Shown: one piece after another, positions 2,552 to 60,752 of the stretch
Layout of the letters: each line of letters begins with the position of its first letter
How positions within the stretch are numbered: the stretch's first letter is position 1
Assembly: GCF_964194025.1 (NCBI RefSeq)
Contig: NC_134475.1
Coordinates: 10,168,001-10,232,000, forward strand
Direction: 5' to 3'
Length of the DNA stretch: 64,000 nucleotides
Source: Convolutriloba macropyga
Lineage: Eukaryota
Position numbers and translations under genes: made by a program
The notes under the pieces: generated by a model
Database searches by the model: none
Seen by the model: the letters and a program-made list of their open reading frames with translations, nothing else
Told to the model about the DNA's origin: nothing

Positions 2552-4369
2552 AGAGGAAAGCTTCAGAACTGAAGAAGGAATAACATGTGATAACGGAGGA
2601 GCAAGTGAAGAGTGCTATCAAAGCCATGATCAACTCGAAAGCCATTGCTCTCGACGGCATAAGTACCCTCCACCTGAAACATTTCAGGCCCAAGATCAGA
2701 AGCTACCTGGCTTGTTTGATTAGTATGTCCTTGAGCACTGGAAGGATCCCCGCTATCTGGAAGACTTCGATGATCATTCCTCTCCAGAAACCGGCCTCCG
2801 AACCCAGCAGTTATAGGCCGGTCAGCATCATCTCTCCGATTGCAAGACTTGCAGAGAAAATAGTACAAGAACAAATCGTGGAGAATGCAGAACTTCCAGG
2901 CGAGCAGCACGGATTTAGAAAGGGATATTCGACATCAACAGCCTTAACTTCAATCACAGAAAAAAATCATCATCGGTTTTAACCAAAAAACGCCGCCTAA
3001 AAACAATCGCAACAGCACCAGACCTTAAAAGGGCGTTCGACGCAGTTGACATCACCCAGCTCCTGAAAATAATACTTGACTCAGACCTCAGAAACAGTAT
3101 CAAGAGATGGCTAACAAGTTATCTTCGAGGAAGTGAGCAACGCACGGAGTTTCATGGATTTTTATCCAAAGCAGCCAAGCTCCGCACAGGTGTGCCACAG
3201 GGAAGCGTTATCTCCCCGATCCTTTTCTCCTGGTACATCGCTGACTTCCCGAAGCCGCCAAAAGACGTGATGCTAATTATGTACGCCGACGACATCACGA
3301 TTGTAAGCCAAGACACCAACATCGAGACAGCAGAAAAAAGAATCAACGAATACCTGGAAACAATCGAGCCCTACCTAAAAGAGAAGCAACTGATCATCTC
3401 TATCGACAAATGCCACAACATGCTGTTCAGCACATGGAAAAAAGAATGGAAACGCAAGCTGAACATCTCCTTAAACAACATCCCAATCGAGACGAAAGAC
3501 AAGTTGAAGCTGCTCGGAGTTACTCTGGACCACGCCCTTACATTCCATGAACATATCAAAGACGACAACGACAAATGCATCAAATCCAACAACGCAATTA
3601 AATCAATAACCCATCCGAATCAAGCGATGAAGAAGAAAGAAGCTCTCACAGTATACAAAGCCATCACCCGATCAAATATTAATTATGCTTGTGGAGTCTG
3701 GACCCCAAATGTCGCAAACAGCCATTGGCAGAAACTAGAAGCTAGACAAAACGACGCTTTACGGTGTGCAACCGGATGTCTGCGAATGACTGGAATTGAC
3801 CATCTCAGAAACGAGACACAATGCATCCCCATTAAGGACCATTAGGATGCTCGCAACCCAGTATGCTCGCTCTGTCAAGAACCATCTGCGCCCATGTCAC
3901 GACGTCGTATTCAATAGTCCAGATCCTCCCCGAAATATGCAAAGGAGTCTGAAGCGGTACTACGTCTCCGAATGCGACCAACTGCAGTTAGACAGCGATA
4001 CAACAAGTCTCAAGGAGATACACACCGGATACGTCAAACAAGCAATCAATAACTTCCAGCCAAACAAAGTCCTAAACGACCCCCCTCCCCTCGATTCACT
4101 CTAAGTAGATAGAAAAGAGCAAAAGCTGGACCGGAAAGAGCAAGTCCGCCTAGCCCAACTGAGAAGCGGATTATGTAGCAGCTTGAACGACTACCGGCAC
4201 CGCATTGGAATCGCAGACTCCCCCCTATGTAGGAAATGCCAAAACGAAGCCGAATCAGTGAACCACTATCTGTCCTGCAACTACGCAGAAAGCGCCGAGC
4301 TGCTTTGGAAAGACCCTGAAAAAGCCGCTGCGTTAACCCGATCCCTCTGAGGGCCTTCACAACAACAAC
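2552..4369 (+). mobile_element. 5'-truncated, frameshifted LINE (RT + C-terminal CCHC) in eIF3L intron 1
   Basis: SYRPVS, QHGFR, PQGSVISPILF, YADD; LAQLRSG..CRKC-X8-H-X3-C; (CAA)n tail; perfect 13-bp TSD agagataccttca at 2539-2551 and 4370-4382. Confidence 0.93.
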
Positions 4370-10211: not shown

Positions 10212-12611
10212 TTGTAATTGCTAGAAATAGTCTTATTGTGCAACATGAGGGACTTTAATTTCGTTTCAATAAAAATTCAATCATTTTTTGGCGTTAGGTT
10301 TTTGAAAAACAGTTAAAACTTCATAAATGCAGTCTTAAAAGTTTTTTTGACCATTTTTTTTGCAAAATGTTTCGATTTTCGTATTTATGATTTCTGCTTT
10401 TTCTTTGAATAGTTCTTTGTATCGGATGATTAGTTATCTTTTATATGTCTTGAATGCTGAACAATGAAATGTAATCGTTTTTCTTGAATTTTTTATTGAT
10501 TTTTAACTTTCAGAAATCAAGAATGTGTTTTTGTTACGGTGTTCCTTACATTGTGCCCATATTCTTCACATTCTAGTCAATATCATTCTATCTTTGTCCT
10601 GGCATTGACATTTATTTTCGGTATATTGATTTTTTCAGTTGTTAAAAATGATTGATTTCAGCTTTTTCTTACATTTTCGTCATTTCTTTGGTTTGCGTTT
10701 GATTTCATTCAACATAAGGCAAAACTGAGAGTTTGATAGCAAGCCTTTTCCACGATTTCCACTTAAGACTATTTACTGCAACTTTCTTTCGGCCTTGGTA
10801 TTAATTTAAACGGATTTTTGCCTTTGAATATTCTTCTGCTGCTTATGTCTTTTCTATTATCAATTTAAGTAGTATTCAATCATATTGTCTAGCATATGTA
10901 CAACAAGGAACAAGTGTGTTGTTATTTGTCTTAATTGAAGTGATTAGAAGTGTAATTTTAGGTGTTTTCTGATTCTTAAATTTGAGCTTTCTGTTTTGAA
11001 AAGATTCAACTTAGTTTCTAAGATTATTATCTGCCGTTTGCTTTCGCGATCTTTTTCAGATTAGAATTATGAATTATTTGAGAGCAATTGATAACCTTGT
11101 CTGTTTTTTCAGTCTCACTTTTTTGACCTCTTTAATTATTTTGGTTTTAACGTTACCAAACGTTTTCAATGATATAAAATTTTGCTGCATTTTGTTTCTC
11201 TTGGTGACAGGGGTTTAAGTTTCACCATTTTTAGAGCAGACCTGGAGAGGTAGTGAGTTGATGGTTTAATACAAAAGGTAGTGGCTTCTGCTGCAATTAC
11301 GGTTTTGTTAGTAAAGTTTTGACGCTTCGAGTCGCTTCCGGAATTCTTCCGGCTATGTTTTTTTTAAGATCTGTTCACACATTTTCATGATTTTTGAAGT
11401 CAAATTGGAGTAGTGATTTTGGTCACGCCGAAACAGGAAGCGGAGCGAAAAAGCGAGCGGTTTTGCAGCGTGAAATTTTTTCGCTCTAATTTTAAAGCAG
11501 GGTGAGAAAACGGTGTTTGAACAAAAATTCGCTTTCTCGCTAGTGGTTGTTTGTTCACATGATTTTTTCTGTTTTTTCAATTTTTTGGATCGGATTTTTT
11601 TTCTAAATGGTTTTTCCAATCGATTCATAGTCCTTTCTAGGTCTAGTTTTCTGTATAGTCAATGGAAATTCTTTGAATTGTACGTCAGGACTTGTCCTGC
11701 TATGTTTTTTCATTTCGTCATGATTTTTGTTACTACCATATGACGTCACAGCCACTTTTTGTTGATTCGTTCATGCAATTTCAACTGAATTGCATGTGTG
11801 ACTTCATTTTTCGCTCTTAGTGGAACGAGGTTTTTGTTCATGCGAGTGATTAAATTTTTGGTCACACTTGACTTACCTCACTCTCAAAAATGACTTCCTC
11901 AATTTGAAATTGACTTTTATTTACTTTAATTCAAAGAGATAAGGTCAAATGGGTGTTTGTGTCACTCTAAATAAAGGTTATTTGAGATCAGCTAATAGAG
12001 GCAGCAATAACTTATACAGATTTTTAATCAAAATATAACAGATCAGCCTTCAATGAAAAGACGATTTTTTTTGGTCTGTCTTTTTTACTGTTTTTTAGAC
12101 TGCCGATCTACGAATCTATTGCGGCTATTTTCTGGCAATCTGCCAGCTATGTTATGTAATTTTTGATATACTGCTGAAAATGCTGGCATAAAAACTATGA
12201 AAAGTTATGAGAGCTAAACCTGATAAGCTACAAAATTGTTTGGATCATTTCCGTTTATGCTCCCCCATTACGTTATGCATCGTATTACAAAACATTTCGT
12301 ATTACAAAATGGATAAATGGATACGTAATTAATGGATGAATCGTATTTTCCTGTGCTCAATTTTGATTAATACAAAATATGGAGTGCCCCATTTTAGATT
12401 TAAAATATTGGGATTTTCACATTATAGTCCACAACGTAGTGGGAGTCTAAGGTATACCCCCATTACCTAATAGGAGGCTATAGTTTTCTGGCGGTTGGGG
12501 CTATGATGGGCAATACCAAAGATATGTATACTGCTGAAACGAGCTGAAACCAGCGACACGTGAAGGTTGACAGCTGTCTGGGTCTGTATATATGTTAATC
12601 ATTTGGTTTAG

Positions 12612-12925
12612 AACTCGTATGAGCAATAAATCGAAGGACGATCTGGCGAAATTAGAGAAACACCAGGGCGTGTGGAACATCCACTCCGTGTTAAACGTAA
12701 TGTATTCTTTGATTGCCAAGAGTCGAATCAATGAACAGCTCAGTGCGTACAATTCGGGCGAGCCACAGGATAAGATAGACGAAATTGCGGGTACATTCGG
12801 TGGTCATCCGCTGTACAAGTTCCTCGGTTTCTTTGCTCTGGTTGGCTTGTGTAGATTGCAGTGTTTGATTGGGGACTATTACTTGGCAGTGACAGTGTTA
12901 GACAACATTCAGCTACACAGGAAAG
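12612..12925 (+). CDS. EIF3L: eIF3L exon 4
   Basis: tttag|A..G|gtaaat; VWNIHSVLNVMYSLI..LYKFLGFFALVGLCRLQCLIGDYY. Confidence 0.95.
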
Positions 12926-13665
12926 GTAAATTCACATAACCATCATATCTATTTTGTTGTTAATTGCTCTCGAATAAATGCTGCCCCCTTTTGTTGTTCC
13001 AGGCTAATTTGTCCGACGTGGGTTGGTAATATCAGGGTGAAACATAGGTTTCCTTGTCATCGGGGTCGAAATTGAAGTTTTGATCAAAATTATAATGAAG
13101 ATTTCTGGCTGTGATTCTATGGACCTAACTGCGAGGGCGGAGATTTGTGTTTCCTGTTATAGCTGTTTTTATCACTAAAGCAATGTAAACATGAAGTGGG
13201 TTTTTGTAGTAATGGTATGAGCCCGTGCTATTAATTTATTGAGAATTATTAATTGCTTTCAAGCGATTATTGTAAACGTGTTGGTCTTTATGCAAAATTT
13301 TTGCTGGACTGTTTTGATTTTTCGAGTGACTTTTACACCCTTGACGTTTTTGTTTATCGTGATCTAAATTTCTCTCTCATTCAGTGCCAGCAGCTGAGCT
13401 CAAGTGGCGGCAGTTAACTACTAAAAGTCAAATGAAAAGTGCGGCGAAGTTGTTGTAATTTTTTTACTTCAATTTTTTTAGTGGTTATAGTGGTATATAT
13501 AATAACCTCAACCCTCCACCCCCACCACCCTTCAAATGACGTGATTTTAGTTACCCCCCCCCCCTCCGACTGAAGCAGGCTGCAATAGATTCGAGATCCC
13601 ACTAGTCGTTCGTTAGTTGTTCGGTCAATTCTTCGTACGTTAGTGGGTTATATTTTGTGTTATAG

Positions 13666-25830: not shown

Positions 25831-26187
25831 GTCTTCATGGACGAAGTGAGAGAACAGTCAAAGATTGCTGTGATCAGAAGCTTCCTCAAATTGTACAGTA
25901 GCATATCGATCCAGAAGCTGGCAGGTTTCATGAGCATCTCTGAGAATGAACTGAGAACGTACCTGATGACGTTCAAGCACAAAATGAAGAATCTTGTGTG
26001 GAGTGGGGGGTCTTCAAGTTTGGACGGACAGTTCAAGATAGCCTCGGACATTGACTTCTATGTCGATGGTGACATGATCCATATTGCAGATACAAAAGTG
26101 GCTGCTAAATACGGAGAGTACTTCATCACCCAAATCCAAAAGTGCGACGAAATCAAAAAGAGACTCAAGTCTATGTCCGTTCAATAG
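25831..26187 (+). CDS. EIF3L: eIF3L exon 8 (PCI C-terminus, stop)
   Basis: tacag|GTC; VFMDEV..IRSFLKLY..FKHKMKNLVW..DFYVDGDMIHIADTKV; TAG 26185-26187; exon lengths sum to a multiple of 3. Confidence 0.96.
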   Translation, partial: VFMDEVREQSKIAVIRSFLKLYSSISIQKLAGFMSISENELRTYLMTFKHKMKNLVWSGGSSSLDGQFKIASDIDFYVDGDMIHIADTKVAAKYGEYFITQIQKCDEIKKRLKSMSVQ

Positions 26188-26541: not shown

Positions 26542-27292
26542 GTTTAATGTACCAAAACAATAGTTCTTGCAATAGTCTCTCCTTGACTCCTTCAGTTTTC
26601 AATTGTAATGCTTGAGCTAAAGTAATAGTGATAATAACGGGATGTTTCCTCGGACTGTTTTGTTGTATTTACAATTGGGAATTGGAGTCGCTATGATCAC
26701 TTTGATGTTGTTTTGGCTAATAATTAAAATTGCTCGATAGCCTCTTTCCTGGCCAAAAGAGATTGGACATTAATGGCGGGCAGTTTTCTTAGGTGAGATT
26801 GCCCTGGGCTGCTCAGAGGAGCTTTCAAAGAGGGTTTAGAGAACTCTGTCGGGAACAATGTGTCGGTGTAAAATCAATAGGTACTTGATCCTGTTCTTGA
26901 GCAATTGCGAATTTTTCGCTGGGATGACGAGATTGATATCAAAGCGTAAGAATAACTAATTTCCTCGATAAATGGAACCGTATGAGTTAAATATGAGCAT
27001 AAATAGCTTATACATTGAGGTGAAAGAGGCCATTCTCCACGATTAGCTTAATTTAACAAATGGGCACAATGGTTTCAACATTAGTCGTCAGAAAAGAGGG
27101 GGTTTGTCGCGCCGTTTTAGACACATTTCTCCCAAAACCCCACGTCCACCGAGATTCGAATCTCGGTGTTAGCGGATGTTCTGGTAGAAATGTGTCAAAA
27201 AGTGTGCGACAGAGCGCGTCTTTTCGCATTAGTGCGTACATCAACCAATACAGTGGCTAAAAAGTGATTGATGCGCTTTTCAGGTGTGCTTT

Positions 27293-28198
27293 ATGACTAT
27301 AGCCACTATTAGTAACAACAGAAGCAGAAGCATGCAGTCCAAGTCTGTGGCGGTGCACGTGATCAACTGCCTGTGCACTGTTTTGCTGACGTCATACCCC
27401 ATCTCCTTAGCCTTCTTGCTGCTCCTCTCTCTTGTTACGTCATCACAGGCATTGGAAGTCATGTGGGCTGTAAACTGCGGAGGACATCATCACATTGACG
27501 AGAATGGAATCCAGTACCTAGAGGACCCACTACGCACGGGCATCGCGTCTGACTATGGCAAAGCTCTGTCTATACAGAGGGTGTCGAGGCACGACGCTAT
27601 TTTGTATCAAACTGAGAGATATCATACCAATTCGTTCTCTTATGAAGTTAATCTGCCAGATGGTGACTTTGTGCTGGTTATGAAGTTTGCTGAAGTTTAT
27701 TTCACGTCTTCTCGACAGAAAGTCTTCAATATTATGCTCAATGACCAGCACGTAGTTGTTCGGGACCTAGACATATTCGATAAAGTTGGGCTAGGTCGGG
27801 CCCATGATGAGATTATACCCTTTACAATTAGAAATGGCAAATTGGTTGTTATCAACGAGGCGTCCACGTTTAACAACGTGCTCAGAGTGACCTTTGTCAA
27901 GACACATTACGACAACCCGAAAATCAACGCTCTATATATCATTCGTGGACGCGCTGATGATGTTCCGAAGCTGCCGCCATTGTTCTCGGATGACATGCAA
28001 CAGCAGCAGGCCAGACGCAAAGTTGACCCCTTCGATGATTCTGATCTGGCAGCGGACAAACAGAAGACCAAGTTTAATAAGAGATCAGGCGCACTGGTTG
28101 AGGATCCATATGCTGACCAGGATGCCAATTTCTTCTGGCCCATTTTCTGCTCTGTGGTTGCATTTATCCCAATTCTGATTTGTCTGTGTAAAATGTAA
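27293..28198 (+). CDS. MLEC: Malectin (ER carbohydrate-binding membrane protein), single coding exon, 301 aa
   Basis: Hydrophobic leader, AVNCGG, ASDYG, ILYQTERY, KFAEVYF, DLDIF..AHDE, YDNPK and a C-terminal TM segment ending AFIPILICLCKM; the start could alternatively be the second Met. Confidence 0.95.
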   Translation: MTIATISNNRSRSMQSKSVAVHVINCLCTVLLTSYPISLAFLLLLSLVTSSQALEVMWAVNCGGHHHIDENGIQYLEDPLRTGIASDYGKALSIQRVSRHDAILYQTERYHTNSFSYEVNLPDGDFVLVMKFAEVYFTSSRQKVFNIMLNDQHVVVRDLDIFDKVGLGRAHDEIIPFTIRNGKLVVINEASTFNNVLRVTFVKTHYDNPKINALYIIRGRADDVPKLPPLFSDDMQQQQARRKVDPFDDSDLAADKQKTKFNKRSGALVEDPYADQDANFFWPIFCSVVAFIPILICLCKM

Positions 28199-41194: not shown

Positions 41195-41685
41195 TTGTTA
41201 ACTTTTCTTCTAAGTACGCGATTCACCGAAACTTTTGAGGAGACAATTTCATAGTGTAAAGGGCGGTTCTTGATCATTTTAGCCTGACCCCACCCCCCCC
41301 CCCCCCCCCACCCTTAACCCTCCCTTCACCCCGCACTCCCCCGTCCATCCTCCTGGAGCTGGTGATTTGAACCCCCCCCCCCCTCGTCCAGTCCTCCAAA
41401 CCGTACCCCCATCGCTTGACCGTACCCCCATCGCTGTCACGTGGTAGATGTCTGTCACCTATTATACCAGACGCTTAATATTTTCCGAATCTTACCGACA
41501 GCTTTGAAATGAAATGAAAGCACAAGATCAAGGTTTATTTGAGCATTGCGAAAATATTATCGAAGCATATGAGACTTTTTGAATACGCATTTTGTCTGAT
41601 ATTCACACCTGCAGCGTCGACTCATTTGAATAATTGGTATTTGGTAAATAATTGGTCAAAAGTTTGTGCTGTTAAACTGAATTGA

Positions 41686-41976
41686 TCAGAGGGACTGCAA
41701 TCTCATTCGCTTAGACATAGATTGTAGTCGCATTCGTTTCTGAAGAGATTGAAGTCTCATTCTCTTTTGGAGTGACTGGAGTCTCATTCTCTTTTGCAGA
41801 GATTGAAGTCGCATCCGTTTGTCCTCTTCGGAGGTCTGTTGTTGGTCTGCTGTTTGGTCTTGATCGTTGTCTTCTGTTTCAGGAGGCATCTCGTAGCTCC
41901 CACAGAATGCCCTCTTTAGTGACTGGAGTCGCATCCTCTTCTCTGGTTCCCAGACATCTGCTATTTCGTCCCCTCT
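41686..41976 (-). CDS. Putative neuropeptide precursor, exon 3 (6 MRLQS peptides, stop)
   Basis: tttcag|AGA; paralogous to exon 2 then five tandem KR-MRLQS(L/M) units; TGA; AATAAA on - strand at 41539-41534. Confidence 0.88.
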   Translation of the reverse strand, partial: RGDEIADVWEPEKRMRLQSLKRAFCGSYEMPPETEDNDQDQTADQQQTSEEDKRMRLQSLQKRMRLQSLQKRMRLQSLQKRMRLQSMSKRMRLQSL

Positions 41977-42794
41977 CTGAAATCGAACCGAGAAATTTTT
42001 GGCCGAACTGAGAGATTTTATTTTAAGGCTATGTCGAATGTAGGTTAATTGAACGTATGAAGTGGGTGTTTTAAATTTATCAGCCAATCAAAGTCCTTAA
42101 ATTCTATATTTTTGTTCGTCTTTTTGTTGGTTCCTTCAATGTTTGGCAACACTATGCAATGCTGAATAAATGAACTACCTCCACCTCAAGGTGAGGTTGG
42201 CGATTGATCATAAATAATCCTTGAAATTAGGATTAGTCTCTAAATCAGAGCTCAGACAAGAGACCCTTATATTTTAGACACCAATTAAGTCTATGGGGGC
42301 AAAAGGCTAAGATATTGCGGTCGTCCTAGACTATATGGTCTGAATAAGGATTAGTTATCCTCGTTGAATTTTCCTCTAAGTTTGACTTCTTGACAACTTT
42401 GAGTTGCGTTTCTTGTTGATAGCAAAGCCAATATTCCAAACTGGCAGCTCGACGAGATAGCCCCATTTGAAGTTTTTTGTTTTTATTTGTTGGTTTTTAT
42501 TTATTTTTGGTTTTATTTATTTTGTGGTGAAATATTGACAGCGGAATTTTTTTGTCATGAAGTGTTCGGCGATATCTTTAGCGTGAGAAATGAAAGTGTT
42601 ATCAATCAAAATTTTCCGAAAAACAATCCATCTGTGAAAGAAAATTTTCTCATTTTTATATTGAAATTGTTTGGTGGTTACTACTCTTCACACACACTAA
42701 CCTATAACAGATACACATCGTTTTTGTGTCGTTTGGTCATGTCTATGTGGTTGTCCATGCCTTTGGCTGTACATGTGAGCGAACGTGTATCTCT

Positions 42795-43006
42795 NNNNNN
42801 NNNNNNNNNNNNNNNNNNNNNNNNNNNNNNNNNNNNNNNNNNNNNNNNNNNNNNNNNNNNNNNNNNNNNNNNNNNNNNNNNNNNNNNNNNNNNNNNNNNN
42901 NNNNNNNNNNNNNNNNNNNNNNNNNNNNNNNNNNNNNNNNNNNNNNNNNNNNNNNNNNNNNNNNNNNNNNNNNNNNNNNNNNNNNNNNNNNNNNNNNNNN
43001 NNNNNN
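42795..43006. other. Assembly gap (212 N) within intron 2 of the peptide gene
   Basis: N run; CT/GT-like flanks suggest a collapsed simple repeat. Confidence 0.98.
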
Positions 43007-44128
43007 CTGTTTGTGTGCATGTATGACTCAAATATTTGCACGCATGAATGCGTAATTAGATTGAAGAATCTTCCATTTCGAGTCTAGGGTAGACTTTTTC
43101 AAGAACAGTTGTCGGAAAAATGGTTGTATTTTTCATTAACCGTGATTTGCCTATAGTCGAGAGTAGATTTTTAGATGTAAAGCACATTTTTATGGCGCTT
43201 TTTATAACGTTTTTCATCTGGATGATTTTAGGAGTGTTCTCTTTTTGGTGTATATTAATCCATTTCTCAACAGCAATCTTAATAAATTATGAGACTAATT
43301 TAGTATTTCCTTCGTTTAAAAGTTTCCGTTTATTGTTGGTTTTTTCTTTGTTGAAGAAGTTTTACCAAATTTTCCATTTAATTTTATAATATCAGGGAAA
43401 TTTTCGACATCTATTTAATAATGCGTTTTATACACTAAGCTTGCGTTTAATGATGCGTACCCATGTTTGAGTAGGTTTTTAATTACGCAACTAATCCGGC
43501 AGTCTACCATGAAGCTTATGTTTTCGTATTACGAACATCGTGATGTTGTAACCTTAATTTTTGACAGCGGTACTTTCACAGGCTTAATTTCAAATTTTTG
43601 TGTGTGCTTGTGCTTAAACGGGCAGCAAACAGGTGTATAATGTAATCTGAATTAGACTGCTTTTTTCTCTAGTTTGGAGTTGTTCTATAAAAAAAATTCC
43701 TTGTCGTTGTCGAGCGAAAATAATTATTTCCTGATTTTACTGACTGGTGGAAATAAAACAAGCTGATACCTAATAACAATTGCTAGCAAATAAGGCGGGG
43801 GATATTTGATATGGAAAATTTTGTCAGTTATTTTAAAGTTGCATTGCGTTTTATAATAGGTAGAAGGGTTTCAATGGATATTTTAAGTTGCTCTCGAAAG
43901 AACATTGATGCAAATATTGTAGACTAATAATGCGTCCGTTATGCCAATTTTTTTCCCAGAGCGTTTTGACTGTTGTCACGGTTGACGTCTTAATTTTTGC
44001 GTGATTTAAATCCCAATGGTAGAAGAGGGCCCATCTGTCGTTCAAGAGCAGTTCGTCTGACATTAGTCTAAAATTTTTCTACGTATCGTTTTTCTTCCAA
44101 AGACCTGGAAAAGAAATTTTGAGACTAC

Positions 44129-44335
44129 CTTAAGGGATTGAAGCCGCATTCTCTTCTGGAGAGATTGAAGTCGCATCCGTTTTTCTTCTGAGGTCTGCTC
44201 CTGATCTGCTGTTTGGTCCTGATCGTTTTCTTCTGTTTCAGGAGGCATCTCGTAACTCCCACAGAATGCCCGCTTTAGTGACTGGAGTCGCATCCTCTTC
44301 TCTGGTTCCCAAACGTCCGCTGTATCGTCATCTCT
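44129..44335 (-). CDS. Putative neuropeptide precursor, exon 2 (3 MRLQSL peptides)
   Basis: tttcag|AGA..AAG|gtagtc; 207 nt, phase 0-0; RDDDTADVWEPEKR-MRLQSL-KR-AFCGSYEM..EEKR-MRLQSLQ-KR-MRLQSL-K. Confidence 0.87.
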
Positions 44336-44795
44336 CTGAAATTTTTACAATTACTGTACTTCTAAATAACCTTGGATCGGCTTTGGTACTTTTTTTTCTG
44401 GTGCATCAAAGGATAAAATCGACTATCAAAATTTTTTTTTAATAAAAACGTTGTTTACGTTTTTTCTTTGATTATGTGCCAATGAAGTAAACGTTCCTGT
44501 CTCTAAATGATCGAATAAAATGCGTCGTTTGGAGGCTCAGTGACTGAAATGAACATCGCCTTGACTCGGGTAATTTTGTTCGATAGTGACCCCCCGTACT
44601 TTTATAGGTTTCACATTAGGCAGAGTTCCTTTTATAGGGTTTACCTGTTACAGATAAATCAACAGTAAAATTTCTTCTGGTCATGGATCTATATTTTTAG
44701 GTGATGGACAGCGCGTGAGTCCCATGCTCTAAAATTTTATCAGACGTCTTGAAAACCAGAAATTGGGTGTGGTCTGAAACATTTTTGATCATTAC

Positions 44796-45158
44796 CTTTT
44801 TGAGAGATTGGAGTCTAATCCGTTTCTTCATAGACTGAAGTCGCATGCGTTTGTTGAGAGCACCGTCCTGGTACATTGTGGGTTCCCCGATGTCACGTGA
44901 GTACATTTGGATCCGGATGCGTTTGTCGTTGGCAGCGTCTGGATCTTCTGTGGTTGCCAGTCTCTCCTCGTCCTCCATAGCCTCTCTTTGCACTTTCTCG
45001 TTCTCAGTAAACGCCATGTCGTACAGCTTCTCGTCTACGCTCTTGGGAACGGTGTACTTGGGACTCCAGTCCACATCCGATTCAGCCGCGACCAAATAGG
45101 CAGCAATGTAAATTAAACAGAAGGCAGTTGTTGTTGAAATCGGAATCCTTGCCATCAT
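44796..45158 (-). CDS. Putative neuropeptide precursor, exon 1 (signal peptide, acidic pro-region, first peptides)
   Basis: MMARIPISTTTAFCLIYIAAYLVAA-ESD signal-like N-terminus; KR-IRIQMYS-R, KR-MRLQSM-KKR-IRLQSL-KK; donor AAG|gtaat, phase 0. Confidence 0.88.
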
Positions 45159-55530: not shown

Positions 55531-56698
55531 TTCCGTTTAAATTTGTATACAGTTTGTATTTTTGTTGGAAATAAGTTATGTCTGCTATTTTTGAGTTCAA
55601 AAAATAATAGGAAAATTGTAATGTTGAATCAAGTATTCGCTCTCATGAAGCAATTAGAGATTTTGTCAATAACCCGATATATTTTTTGTAAATGATTATT
55701 GCAGATATCAAAATTCTATCTTTTAGTACCGGTGGCATTATGAAAGCATTCCTGGTTGATATCATAATTCAAAAAATTATAAAAATAAAACTTCATATGT
55801 CGTCTATGAAAAGCTGTCATCTTAGGACTTTGGAAGTTCTAAAAAATTTTTTTAAGAAATCCTAAAATCGGCTGAAACTAAACGCAAACTATAGTAAAAA
55901 AAAATCTGGAATTTTCCAGTGACCTCGTATTTATGGAAAAGTTGTAGTCATAGAATTTCATACAGAATTTTTTTTGGCAACCTGAAACTGAGAGATCACA
56001 ATTTTGGGATATTTCGGAAATTCCTTGTTCTACAGTCAAATGTTTCTTAAGCAGAACAAATGTTGCCACAGCAAACTTTTTCAATCTCAAATCTCTATTT
56101 TGCTGCTTCTTTGTCGTTATTGATATGAGCGAAGTTTAGAATTATTTAACAGCTGTCAGTAAAATAAAGAAAATAATAGGAAATTTGCCGGAACTAGCCG
56201 AACTTGAAGTAGAAATGGTCGTTTCTGAGTAATGACTATTTGGCGTGGCTGTGAACAGGAGAATTAAAAAATTTTTAATAGCAAAATCAGATTTACTCAA
56301 TATTCAATTTCTCGACGAGACCACGCTCATAGAACATTAATCGTTCAGAAATTGATTCAGATTTTCAGTTCTCCTCTTGGTCCCAGCCACACCAAATACA
56401 CATTACTTTTCTGTGGTTGACTTTCTGTCAAGGAAAAATTGCAATGATAATAATAGCTGTTATTGATAGGTAATTTCTATGATAAATTTCTTGATGATAA
56501 TTAAAATTTTAGGATTTGAAAAGTGAAAGAATTAGTCCAATGTCAAATCAGAAATTCAATCTTTGTAATTCGTTTGTCACTCGTTTCTGTAAGCTTCATA
56601 AACTATTAACTGAACAAAGTGCGCTTATTTGAGGATATTTGCAATTACCGTGTCAACAGAAAACGTTTCTGATTTCACATTCCATTTTTAGAAGTAAC

Positions 56699-57700
56699 AT
56701 GTGCCGACTGTATTTAGAGGCTGGCAAAATACTCCATAAAAACGCACACGGAACTGGCCCCGAAACTCAATTAAGGGCTCTACTGGAAAATGACAAGACT
56801 TGTATTTTCAAGAAACGACAGTGTCTCCGTGCACTCGTCACAATTGTGAAGAATAATGAGACGCAGTTGGCGAAACAACTGCTGAAAGCAGAATCAGTCG
56901 AAAAAAGCGACGTTAAACACAAAACTGAAAAGTATTTCACCCACGCTGTTATCTTACAAGACTTTTGCAATCGGAATTTTAAAAAGCGCCTTCAAAAACG
57001 CTGTCCATTTCACGATGTTGAACACGCTCTGCAGGAGTTCGCATTTGCGAATCGTAAAGGCAGTGGAGTCGAGAAAAGTGGCGAAAATGGTGGGGATTTT
57101 ACAAATTTTGGATTGGCTCAAAATACTAATGACGAATTCTCCTCAAATTTTGCAGACCCTGCTTCCTTGGAAAGCGGACATAGTGGCCTCGAAACTATTA
57201 AAGAATTCGATTATCTTCGATTTGTCAGCTCTAGTTTTAGAACTTCTGGTTATTCTGCAAATATTCGCCGAGCATCGCCGCCTTCGTCATTCGAGGTCGA
57301 AGTCGAAAACTTGGATCCGAGCACAGAAGCTATTAGTCTAGTAGAGAATAAATTATGCCTAGAGAGGAAATATTTATCGAGTCAGGAAAGTAATGACTGT
57401 TTAATACGCGCTATGAAGGCACTAACTCCCGAACAGTTCATAGTAGACCCGGTGCTACCCAACTTGTTCATGTTTGCTCGTCGAAGCAGGGTGAAAAAGA
57501 GCCCGATGTTCAAACAAGGTTTGTTCTATTCGCAAGATAGAGCCAGTGCCATGGCAGCGCATGTGCTTGGTGTTGAGGAGGGTGGAGTAGCTATGGATGC
57601 ATGTGCTGCTCCAGGCAGTAAAACTTCCTGCATTTTAGACTGCTACCTTAAAGGAACGGGGAAGTTGTACGCCGTGGAAAAGGATGCATCTCGGTTTCAG
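56699..57700 (+). CDS. NSUN5: rRNA m5C methyltransferase NSUN5/Rcm1, exon 1 of 3 (joined 505 aa)
   Basis: LYLEAGKIL N-terminus, FIVDPVLPNLFMF, QDRASAMAAHVL, SAM-binding motif DACAAPGSKT, AVEKD..RF; donor CAG|gtatc. Confidence 0.9.
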
Positions 57701-58374
57701 GTATCGCTTGTTTTTGCTCGTAGTTTGTGATTTCTATTTCGGATTCCATGTTCCTCGAATCTACCAGAATTAATAATGGAATAGTTAAAAAAAAAGAGGA
57801 ATTGAGAGTCGAAATTGGATTCATTTTATCCTGTACTATTTTATTTTGCTTTGACATTCTTTTCTTGAAATTAAAGCATAACGAATAATTTTACGGCCGC
57901 TTTTATTTTGACGTCACTTGAGTTGAGTTAAAGGTAATAGCGAAAATCAAAAATAAATTCTTTTGCTTTCATAAAATTTGGTTTTATGAACAGGCTGATG
58001 CGTTAAAGCCTCTCAAAAACGTATAGTTGATTACTGATTTTTTTTGAAAAAAATCTCATCAACATCAGAAAAATAATAGCGCCAGTCAATTAAGGAAACA
58101 ATAAAGAAGCAATGAAAAAATATTTATTTTAACTTTATATTTTTAGATTTTGAAGATCAGTTGGAGGAAATTTTGTGAGATTTAGTTGATTATGAAGGAA
58201 TAATTTCTTGCATTTTTAGATTGTTCTCCATATGCGATTCAAAAGATTCAAGATATGATCGGTAATGAAGATTTTAAGTTTTATTATCTTGAGGAAAATA
58301 TTAATCCTACTAAAAACTAACTAGCAAGAGATATCCGTCTCAATCGTTGTTGTGAATTTATGTCTTTTGTTCAG

Positions 58375-58573
58375 ACTCTGCAGAGACTGCTCTCCCGGTT
58401 TTCCAATGTGGCTTTCCTCAACGAAGACTTCACCAGCCTTGATCCGAGATCGTACGCTGATGTCACTCATATTCTTGTGGATCCTTCCTGTTCGGGTTCA
58501 GGCATGATCGGCTACAAGTCACACCAGGCAGACACAGAGCCACTGCACCAGGCCAGACTCATGGCCTTACAGA
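58375..58573 (+). CDS. NSUN5: NSUN5 exon 2
   Basis: ttcag|ACT..A|gttagt; EDF..DP..HILVDPSCSGSGM (motif IV Cys, NSUN5-type DPSCSGSG). Confidence 0.93.
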
Positions 58574-58833
58574 GTTAGTAGTAGCTTGGCGACTTTGACA
58601 ATTACGATTAGCTTCACATTATTGAATAATTGCTTGTTAAAAGTTAACTTTAAAAACGATGAGTTTGGTAGATTTGAGGGATATGTTGTATGTATAATAT
58701 TTGCTCGTGTGTTAAGAAAAGTATCATCTAGTGCATAAAAATGATTTGGTAAAAGCACCCCTATACATTTTTTGTGCGTAATGACAGCAGGCAGGAAATT
58801 CTGATCACAGGGACTGAAAACAAAGCCACATGT

Positions 58834-60377
58834 ATTTGCTCTCGAACAAAATTTGAAGCAATGATTGTAAATGTGATTTTTTTGCACAATTTTTGCTTGA
58901 CGGTTTTCTTCTAGAACATTCTTTTGATTTCACTTCTCGTGTGACTTTTTCACGCTTCACTTTTTCAGTGATTTGAATTGCGCGCATTCAGCAATTAAGT
59001 CTGTTTCTAAAATAAAACCGATTGTGAAAGCTGACCGGGTATAGCCCGTGTAGCGTTAATGGTGAATGGCCAAAAGTCTCATCCAGGAGGGCGTTATTTC
59101 GAACCCCTCACTTGTCAGAAGATTTCTTGTAAATTTTGTGCCTCGCCAGTCGTTCAAGAGCACGTCATTAATTGCTCTTGAACGAAGTTCATAGCAATTA
59201 TTGTAAACGTGTGTGTCTTTTTACGATTCGAAGAGGAGTATTGAGATTCTACTGGTTTTTTTTAGCAGAAAGCAAGTTTGTTCATGACTTGAATTTTGAC
59301 TTCTTTCTATTCGAGCATTTACCTCCGTTTTTGATTGTTGACTTCTGTTCTCGAACATTGGACTTTAACAGTAGCTTCGTTTGTAATGTATAGTAATTAG
59401 GAACTGCTGGTAATGTTCAAGGTGAAGAGGTCATTTTGAGAATTTTTTGTTCCTATATAAGTCACCCCTAATTATCTAAACTACACCGCACAACCCACCC
59501 CCCCCCCACCACCTATCTATCCCTTAATTGTTCAGTTTTGAAAGTTCTGGTGCAGTTGTCTTTACTTTTATAAACAACCCCCCCCCCAAGAGATCACCCG
59601 CAATGTTTTGTTCGTAATCGTTTGGGCTCTTCCCCTGTAATCTATGTATGTTAATGTACAGATTGTTAAAATAAGTGGTTTCAAGGTTTTCTTCTGGAAT
59701 CTTTCTGGAATGTTTCTTGGTCAAATAAAACTGCAGAACACGGTCAAATAAAGTGAAACGAAAAAAACCGTTTTATGTTAAATGAATGAAATTCGGTTTG
59801 AATGTGAACTACGGAGTGGAAATTCGGTTTGAATGTGAACATTATGGCCAAATAGCACAGTCGGCAATGTATATGAAAATGGTTATGAAGCGGGAGGTCA
59901 GTGGTTGGAATCCAGGTGGGGGTAAATGTTTTTCCACCCCCTGTCGTTCGAGAGCAATTCTTCCGACATTAGTCGGTTAATTGCTCTTTAACGAAGTTCA
60001 TAGCAATTATTGTAAACGTGTGTCTTTTTTAATGCAAAATTTTTGCTTGACGGTTTCGACTTTTCGAGTGACTTTTACGCCCTTAACTTTTTGCGTTTTG
60101 CGTTATCTAAAATTTCTTAATCACAATTTCAAGCTGCTGAACTCAATTGGCGGCAATTTAATACTAAAAGTCAAATGAAAAGTGAGCCGAAACTGGTGCC
60201 ATTTTTCACTTTAAGTCTTAAAAGTGGTATATCTTAACCTCTAATGTGGTTATTTGAAGCCAACTATTGAACTTCTTAGTCCCATTTAGGCTCCTCCTCC
60301 CCCCTACCCGGACTGAAGCAAGCTGCAATTGATTAGAGCTTCCACGTTCGAGAGCAATTCTTCCGACGTTTAGTGGG
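58834..60377 (+). mobile_element. Three tandem HINE family B units in NSUN5 intron 2
   Basis: Unit starts at ~58834, 59170 and 59979 (attgctct-like); 3' ends at ~59163, 59976 and 60377; tRNA-like cassettes at 59044 and 59846. Confidence 0.78.
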
Positions 60378-60435
60378 TTATGTTTGTCGTTGTCCAACGT
60401 TAGTGGGTTTATATTTATTGTAGACCTCATTTTAG

Positions 60436-60752
60436 AATTTCAAGCGCAGCTGCTACTGCACGCTCTATCATTCCCTGGTGTCCAAGTGGTAGTCTACAGC
60501 ACATGCAGCATCAAGTCAGAGGAGAACGAGCAGGTTGTTCAGTATGTCCTCAGGCAGACTAACGAGTGGTGCCTGGAGACAATTCCAAAACACTATAGCT
60601 CATCCAGGGGCCAGGAAATTTTCACAGAAGTAGCCCCACATTGCATCAGATTTTGGCCAGCGAAAGACTTCACCCACGGATTTTTCATTTGTAAATTTGT
60701 GAGAACTGAAAGTTATATGTCTAATACTATAGGTCAGAAAAATTCAATATAA
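60436..60752 (+). CDS. NSUN5: NSUN5 exon 3 (stop)
   Basis: tttag|AA; FQAQLLLHALSFP..VVYSTCSIKSEENEQVV (motif VI Cys)..THGFFICKFVR. Confidence 0.93.

Follow-up and report, generated by a model that had tools for sequence, protein, structure and literature searches.

The stretch of DNA described here, 64,000 nucleotides (nt) from the acoel Convolutriloba macropyga (NCBI RefSeq assembly GCF_964194025.1, contig NC_134475.1, positions 10,168,001 to 10,232,000 of the forward strand; the whole stretch is called the window hereafter), carries on its minus strand, between 45158 and 41686, a three-exon gene, referred to below as the RLQS gene, whose probable product is a secretory prepropeptide like those of multi-copy neuropeptides or peptide hormones. 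Judging from the sequences compared, the RLQS precursor and its relatives most likely constitute a previously undescribed, acoel-restricted family of multi-copy peptides. This reading is carried by observed features, namely the gene structure, the repeat architecture, the pattern of conservation, purifying selection, synteny and a narrow taxonomic spread. The gene model, LOC142344442, has already been predicted by RefSeq, and the new part is its reading as a peptide precursor.

The three exons are located at 45158-44796 (363 nt), 44335-44129 (207 nt) and 41976-41686 (291 nt including the TGA stop codon), and their coding sequence of 861 nt is translated into 286 amino acids (aa) with phase 0 at every junction. 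There is an in-frame stop codon upstream of the start, and the ATG at 45158 is the first in-frame ATG after it. Intron 1 (44336-44795, 460 nt) and intron 2 (41977-44128, 2152 nt as assembled) are both GT..AG introns of phase 0 on the minus strand, with the donors AAG/GTAATG and AAG/GTAGTC, respectively, and the acceptor ATTTCAG/AGA in both cases (the slash marks the splice site), and both interrupt a KR cleavage site between its K and its R (AAG/AGA). The product shows zero residue differences from the RefSeq protein XP_075252206.1 (P0002 here), an "uncharacterized protein" of C. macropyga, and this identity, together with the phase-0 GT..AG junctions, bears out the first-pass annotation of the window, in which three minus-strand exons had been joined in frame to about 286 aa.

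Exon 1 (121 codons) holds the start codon, a signal-type leader, an acidic pro-region with a conserved DEKLY(D/N)M, and then KR-IRIQMYS-R, MRLQSM and IRLQSL, and its final codon is the K of the first interrupted KR site. Exon 2 (69 codons) is a phase-0/0 cassette which reads R-DDDTADVWEPE-KR-MRLQSL-KR-acidic spacer-KR-MRLQSLQ-KR-MRLQSL-K. Exon 3 (96 codons and the TGA) opens with a second, duplicated copy of the exon 2 cassette, after which come adjoining units with a 27-nt period, namely MRLQSLQ three times, MRLQSMS and a terminal MRLQSL that runs into the stop codon. An AATAAA polyadenylation-signal hexamer is found at 41534-41539 on the minus strand, 146 nt 3' of the stop codon. At 41290-41390, 150-250 nt beyond this hexamer in the minus-strand reading, the sequence is rich in G and includes long homopolymers of about 11 and about 18 G. 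The window has an assembly gap at 42795-43006 (212 N, an estimated length), which lies wholly within intron 2, 1122 nt downstream of the donor of exon 2 and 818 nt upstream of the acceptor of exon 3; because it is intronic and crossed by no reading frame, the gene model is independent of its length and frame. The gap may hide a further 207-nt phase-0/0 cassette exon, and since such a symmetric copy would keep the frame, the number of 11 peptide units given below is a minimum.

Residues 1-25 of the precursor (MMARIPISTTTAFCLIYIAAYLVAA, followed by ES; 45084-45158, minus strand) are predicted to be a signal peptide, having a basic n-region, the hydrophobic core AFCLIYIAAYLVAA and a V-x-A motif at the putative cut (V-A-A/E). 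The prediction relies on a Kyte-Doolittle heuristic (the best 12-mer, in the leader, is 2.41 and the maximum 19-mer elsewhere is -0.53), and on equivalent leaders in orthologues; the same kind of scan found no second hydrophobic or membrane segment in the C. macropyga protein. The mature protein is composed of 20% D+E and 20% K+R, and splitting at dibasic sites gives 11 units, that is, MRLQSL (four copies), MRLQSLQ (four copies), MRLQSM, MRLQSMS and IRLQSL (one copy each), in addition to the divergent IRIQMYS-R-DIGEP... and acidic spacers, including AFCGSYEMPPETE... twice. KR precedes the 11 units and the divergent one, and K/R-R follows all of them except the last. This recount agrees with the unit numbers of the first-pass annotation, and the signal-like leader, acidic spacers and KR-flanked units that it had described were likewise recovered, the leader by hydropathy. 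When all six frames of the window were scanned for the motif [MILVY]R[LIV]Q[SAM][LMIYF], there were 12 matches, all inside the three exons, against a mean of 0.7 in shuffled sequence.

The earlier argument that variation at silent sites marks a constraint on the peptide and not a DNA satellite is borne out by the numbers. Among the 11 units the proportion of synonymous differences (pS) is 0.75 and that of nonsynonymous differences (pN) is 0.06; Arg is encoded by CGA, AGA and CGG and the third-position Leu by four codons. Between exon 2 and its duplicate, which takes up the first 70 codons of exon 3, the synonymous divergence (dS) is 0.79 and the nonsynonymous divergence (dN) 0.04 (dN/dS about 0.05), and the similarity of the two ends at the ATTTCAG acceptor, the flanking introns being unalignable. 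Consequently, the cassette duplication must be old, and purifying selection acts on both copies along with their spacers. One spacer, AFCGSYEMPPETE(E/D)NDQDQTADQ(E/Q)QTSEE, which is located at 44184-44290 and 41825-41931 on the minus strand, is nearly unchanged between the cassettes despite a dS of about 0.8; it has one Cys per copy, is not conserved in other species, and might serve as a second product specific to the lineage or help in processing. Between species, the unit and KR columns are 84% identical versus 32% for the remaining mature columns. As read from these sequence divergences, it is confirmed that selection acts on the peptide units and their cleavage sites, and neither on the DNA itself nor, across species, on the spacers. 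The phase-0 duplication of the cassette exon and the 27-nt unit duplications in the last exon would have raised the peptide dosage in the C. macropyga lineage.

Relatives were sought by a word-index search and by an exhaustive profile search with hidden Markov models among 1.84 billion representative proteins; both found the RLQS family only, the profile search with seven matches. The relatives include P0003 (173 aa), a single-exon open reading frame (ORF) in another genome (ENA ERZ25071366, ERZ25878734), P0004 (223 aa) and P0009 (224 aa), which are uninterrupted ORFs with flanks resembling untranslated regions from two JGI samples whose contigs look like assemblies of marine metatranscriptomes, P0005, which is a fragment in MERC (run ERR1712226), and P0006, from a metagenome contig, which under the standard code ends at LRLQSL-stop with 216 aa. 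A length of 302 aa for P0006 was discarded, as the gene call (L004, 327-1235) had taken four TGA as Trp and so gained 86 spurious residues past LRLQSL-stop. The uninterrupted ORFs with such flanks in apparent metatranscriptome samples, together with the MERC entry, suggest that the relatives are transcribed, and the genomes behind them are presumably those of other acoels. Furthermore, the same gene occurs in another assembly or haplotype belonging to a very close genome (P0001, P0008 and P0010; ENA contigs of 189,896 and 178,832 bp), with exon 1 about 97% identical to that of the window, RGDET versus RDDDT in exon 2 and apparently the same ORF in exon 3, where a mismatch between the two strings was put down to the TTG start residue. 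P0001, P0008 and P0007, the ORFs matching exons 1, 2 and 3, are each recorded on one 189,896-bp ENA contig, which, going by the contig metadata alone, suggests that an independent assembly also has the three exons linked. P0008 was also considered as a third cassette, but its upstream KFQ and its downstream MSDELL read-through are the flanks of exon 2 in the window, so it is most simply an allelic or strain copy of exon 2.

A common plan is shared by four proteins of the family: a signal peptide, DEKLY(N/D)M, an acidic region, KR-[IV]R[IV]QM[YF][SN]R, two units, a spacer, one unit, a spacer, and two to three units running to the stop codon. The C. macropyga precursor departs from this plan by its cassette duplication and by the extra 27-nt units in exon 3. 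By the hydropathy heuristic, P0003, P0004 and P0006 have leaders equivalent to that of C. macropyga; the overall identity between species is about 40-50%, and LRLQSL and YRLQSL occur as unit variants in orthologues. The intronless P0003 and the transcript-like P0004 continue uninterrupted across the KR sites equivalent to those split by introns in C. macropyga, which supports both splice junctions. In addition, P0003 is arranged head-to-head with an RsmB/NSUN-type methyltransferase gene (L001, 4364-5387, minus strand), and in the window an RsmB/F (NSUN-type) RNA methyltransferase gene (56639-60752, plus strand) is likewise head-to-head with the RLQS gene, at a distance of about 11.5 kb versus about 0.6 kb in the P0003 genome; the product encoded by its first large exon (56.7-57.7 kb) shares 50% identity with that of the gene next to P0003. 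Because the head-to-head pairing is kept in both genomes, the orthology of P0003 is supported.

These comparisons make it very improbable that the gene is a prediction artefact or an intracellular repeat protein, in which case the KR-MRLQSLQ periodicity would reflect a basic helical repeat and the leader would be no signal peptide. It is true that RefSeq names the product merely "uncharacterized protein", and that the exact P0002 sequence is found on one genomic contig only, with no transcript in the collections searched. However, the hydrophobic N-terminal leader is kept in four independent sequences, the spacing of the units is variable and the spacers are acidic and unconserved, the ORF is intact in the intronless orthologue and in the transcript-like contigs, and the low dN/dS between the duplicated exons is also against such an origin.

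The relatives also change the view of amidation. A C-terminal Gly, once exposed by carboxypeptidase trimming, is converted into an amide. The C. macropyga protein contains no G-[KR][KR] site, so the term "non-amidated" in the first-pass annotation holds for this gene; it does not hold for the family, since Gly-KR units are present in P0006 (MRLQSLG-KR three times), P0004 (MRLQSMG-KR) and P0003 (LRLQAMG-KR). In total, G-[KR][KR] occurs twice in P0004, twice in P0003 and three times in P0006, of which one, one and three, respectively, follow peptide units. Residue 7 in the family is absent, Q, S, N or G, and the conserved part is the N-terminal hexapeptide. As predicted from these signals, amidation is optional across the RLQS family and missing only in the C. 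macropyga gene.

From these features we infer a precursor that would be secreted, processed, expressed in neuronal or endocrine cells and involved in receptor signalling. The leader of 25 residues would direct the precursor into the endoplasmic reticulum and then be removed; in the regulated secretory pathway, prohormone convertases of the subtilisin/kexin type would cleave after each KR, KKR or QKR, and the basic residues would then be trimmed by a carboxypeptidase E/D-type enzyme. The predicted C. macropyga products are MRLQSL (four copies), MRLQSLQ (four copies), MRLQSM, MRLQSMS, IRLQSL and the acidic spacer peptides, and an IRIQMYS-type peptide is predicted through a monobasic cut. By calculation, the monoisotopic masses are about 746.41 Da for MRLQSL and about 874.47 Da for MRLQSLQ. 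The short cationic peptides would be stored, released and act on a putative receptor, the bioactive part being the conserved N-terminal core (M/L/I)-R-L-Q-S-(L/M), with residue 7 free to vary and a G at that position giving an amide in other species. The convertase/carboxypeptidase-type architecture that had been recognized in the first pass is confirmed, and gains support from orthologues in which units and KR sites are conserved while spacers diverge. Moreover, each of the closest neighbours of the protein by a protein language model, with scores of 0.82-0.86, is a multi-copy neuropeptide precursor (tachykinin, prothoracicostatic peptide, allatostatin A, pro-TRH, PBAN and FLP-1), although this likeness is only a lead.

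Several points weigh against a neuropeptide or peptide hormone. The predicted C. macropyga peptides are without an amidation signal; amidation is the commonest mark of invertebrate neuropeptides, yet it is not obligatory. Cleavage at KR-M-R might also take place behind the second Arg and would then yield other products. Secreted peptides of non-neuronal kinds (epithelial, glandular, pheromone or defence) would share the architecture. In addition, neither the precursor nor its peptides were listed by Thiel et al. 2018 (PMC6188537), despite motif searches and liquid chromatography-tandem mass spectrometry (LC-MS/MS) on C. macropyga. The third of these points amounts to an explanation of its own, namely that the gene is a secreted multi-copy precursor of gland, epidermal or digestive cells whose products serve as pheromone, defence, symbiont- or prey-directed peptides. 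Architecture alone cannot separate neuropeptides from other convertase-processed multi-copy peptides, the C. macropyga peptides are short, cationic and unamidated, and Thiel et al. 2018 did not report them among the results from peptide extracts, all of which would suit such a role. Nevertheless, it is considered quite unlikely, because a six-residue core kept tightly at an overall identity of about 40-50% between species suits recognition by a receptor better than it suits fast-evolving defence or prey-directed peptides, and because the amidation signals of the orthologues are typical of signalling peptides of the regulated pathway.

With regard to known families, no Pfam family reached its cut-off for P0002, P0003, P0004 or P0006, and at E-values up to 1 there was sub-threshold noise only (Enterochelin_N, Guanylin); a profile search of the PDB found no match to solved structures, weak ferritin noise only. 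Literature searches for MRLQSL, RLQSM, LRLQSL and IRIQMY returned nothing relevant, and those for RLQSL gave, among the matches listed, SARS-CoV-2 papers only. Thiel et al. 2018 (PMC6188537; preprint 10.1101/265579) analysed 13 xenacoelomorph transcriptomes, including that of C. macropyga, together with LC-MS/MS. Their list for this species comprises SS, AWD, SSxxxF, PSFamide, LWD, LYDIMamide and MxGF precursors and 15 further candidates, and the RLQS precursor is missing from that section, which is apparently complete (PMC6188537). The motifs RLQS, MRLQ, LQSL and IRIQ gave chance matches only (G-protein-coupled receptors and unrelated candidates) in the portions of the supplements available as text, which is patchy for Hofstenia and Isodiametra. 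A review of September 2026 (PMC13551398) still cites the 2018 catalogue, with "four MCPs exclusive to Acoela". Pfam, the literature, the 2018 list and this review thus agree with the first-pass statement that RLQSL could not be matched to a familiar family, the acoel MR(F) peptides being set apart by motif and description. The MR(F) peptides, a near neighbour, had not been named in the first-pass annotation.

The MR(F) peptides are known from Isodiametra pulchra and Childia submaculatum (MRFIPE, MRFAPH and MRFSPH, for example; Thiel 2018, PMC6188537); they begin with Met-Arg-Phe-x-Pro, and whether they are amidated differs from species to species (PMC6188537). Like the RLQS peptides they are acoel-restricted and flanked by KR or RR, the precursors being compared by motif and description. 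It is conceivable, though unlikely, that the RLQS gene is the convolutid form of this MR(F) precursor, in which MRFxP has drifted to MRLQS. Both kinds of peptide have 6-7 residues and are defined by an N-terminal Met-Arg-hydrophobic motif and not by the C-terminus; in both, copies abut at the C-terminal end of the precursor, the last copy reaching the stop codon; and in both, amidated and non-amidated copies vary between species. Furthermore, no MR(F) precursor of C. macropyga is reported in the 2018 list, so the two could be mutually exclusive. However, the RLQS units have L for F and S for P (MRLQS(L/M) in C. macropyga), so that only M-R is in common with MRFxP, and even the M is absent in IRLQSL and in LRLQSL and YRLQSL of the orthologues. 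The whole hexapeptide is conserved across species in RLQS, whereas in MRF peptides the C-terminal portion shows no conservation, either inside a precursor or from one species to another. As for the layout of copies, five abut in exon 3 and the rest are split by acidic spacers, and Q-S-L/M is conserved with only residue 7 varying. The RLQS precursors add DEKLYNM, the [IV]R[IV]QM[YF]SR unit and interspersed acidic spacers; by eye, neither DEKLYNM nor [IV]R[IV]QM[YF]SR is visible in the MRF precursor of Childia. The profile search returned no MRF-type protein, although the presence of the MRF transcriptomes in that library is uncertain.

A separate family, which is favoured here over a drifted MR(F) form, would resemble other orphan xenacoelomorph precursors of Thiel 2018 (MxGFG, SSxxxF, AWDF, LWDY, FxxxFamide and candidates of single species, among them SYQFLIPE of C. 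macropyga) in its signal peptide, acidic spacers, KR-flanked paracopies, lineage restriction and unusual mixture of amidated and non-amidated paracopies, while their peptide motifs are unrelated to RLQS. The overall preprohormone architecture is also common to the precursors of tachykinin, allatostatin A, myoinhibitory/prothoracicostatic peptide, FMRFamide-like peptides and pro-TRH. These classical bilaterian multi-copy precursors, however, have no sequence or motif similarity to RLQS, and their families are defined by conserved amidated C-termini, whereas what defines RLQS is an N-terminal core, the C-terminus being free.

The window contains other features besides the RLQS gene and its methyltransferase neighbour, all on the plus strand. 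ORFs at 12592-12939 and 25837-26187 match Pfam Paf67, which we take to be eIF3 subunit L, and an ORF at 898-1251 resembles the N-terminal exon of a Paf67 gene; if it is, the gene spans about 25 kb (898-26187) with very long introns. Retrotransposon-type reverse transcriptase ORFs at 2587-3845 (RVT_1 match at 3192-3845) are probably located in the first long intron of this gene. A 304-aa ORF at 27284-28198, which contains a complete Malectin domain (E 6e-42) and has a hydrophobic tail at its C-terminus, looks like a single-exon malectin gene. No tRNA genes were found in the 64-kb window.

Acoels belong to a lineage that is frequently regarded as the sister group of the remaining bilaterians. 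Most neuropeptide precursors conserved in Bilateria are missing from them, and they depend instead on multi-copy peptides of their own lineage; the 2018 survey is to our knowledge the sole catalogue of acoel neuropeptides. Orphan multi-copy peptide precursors appear in most newly sequenced invertebrate genomes, and the RLQS family brings no conceptual change; it is unsurprising in kind and useful for acoel neurobiology. It would add to the short acoel list a ligand that is conserved in several species, is syntenic, has a clear core motif and has had its copy number raised by exon duplication. It would also provide a concrete peptide for receptor deorphanisation and for the marking of cell populations in a model photosymbiotic acoel, and, after the MR(F) peptides, another case in which an N-terminal Met-Arg defines the peptides while amidation is optional. 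More tentatively, RLQS, perhaps together with MRF, might represent an acoel-specific "N-terminal Met-Arg" peptidergic system, in which the receptor reads the N-terminal core and tolerates a free, extended or amidated C-terminus. If this were true, such a system would reverse the usual C-terminal-amide logic of bilaterian neuropeptides, and its ligand would be defined well enough for the deorphanisation of its receptor.

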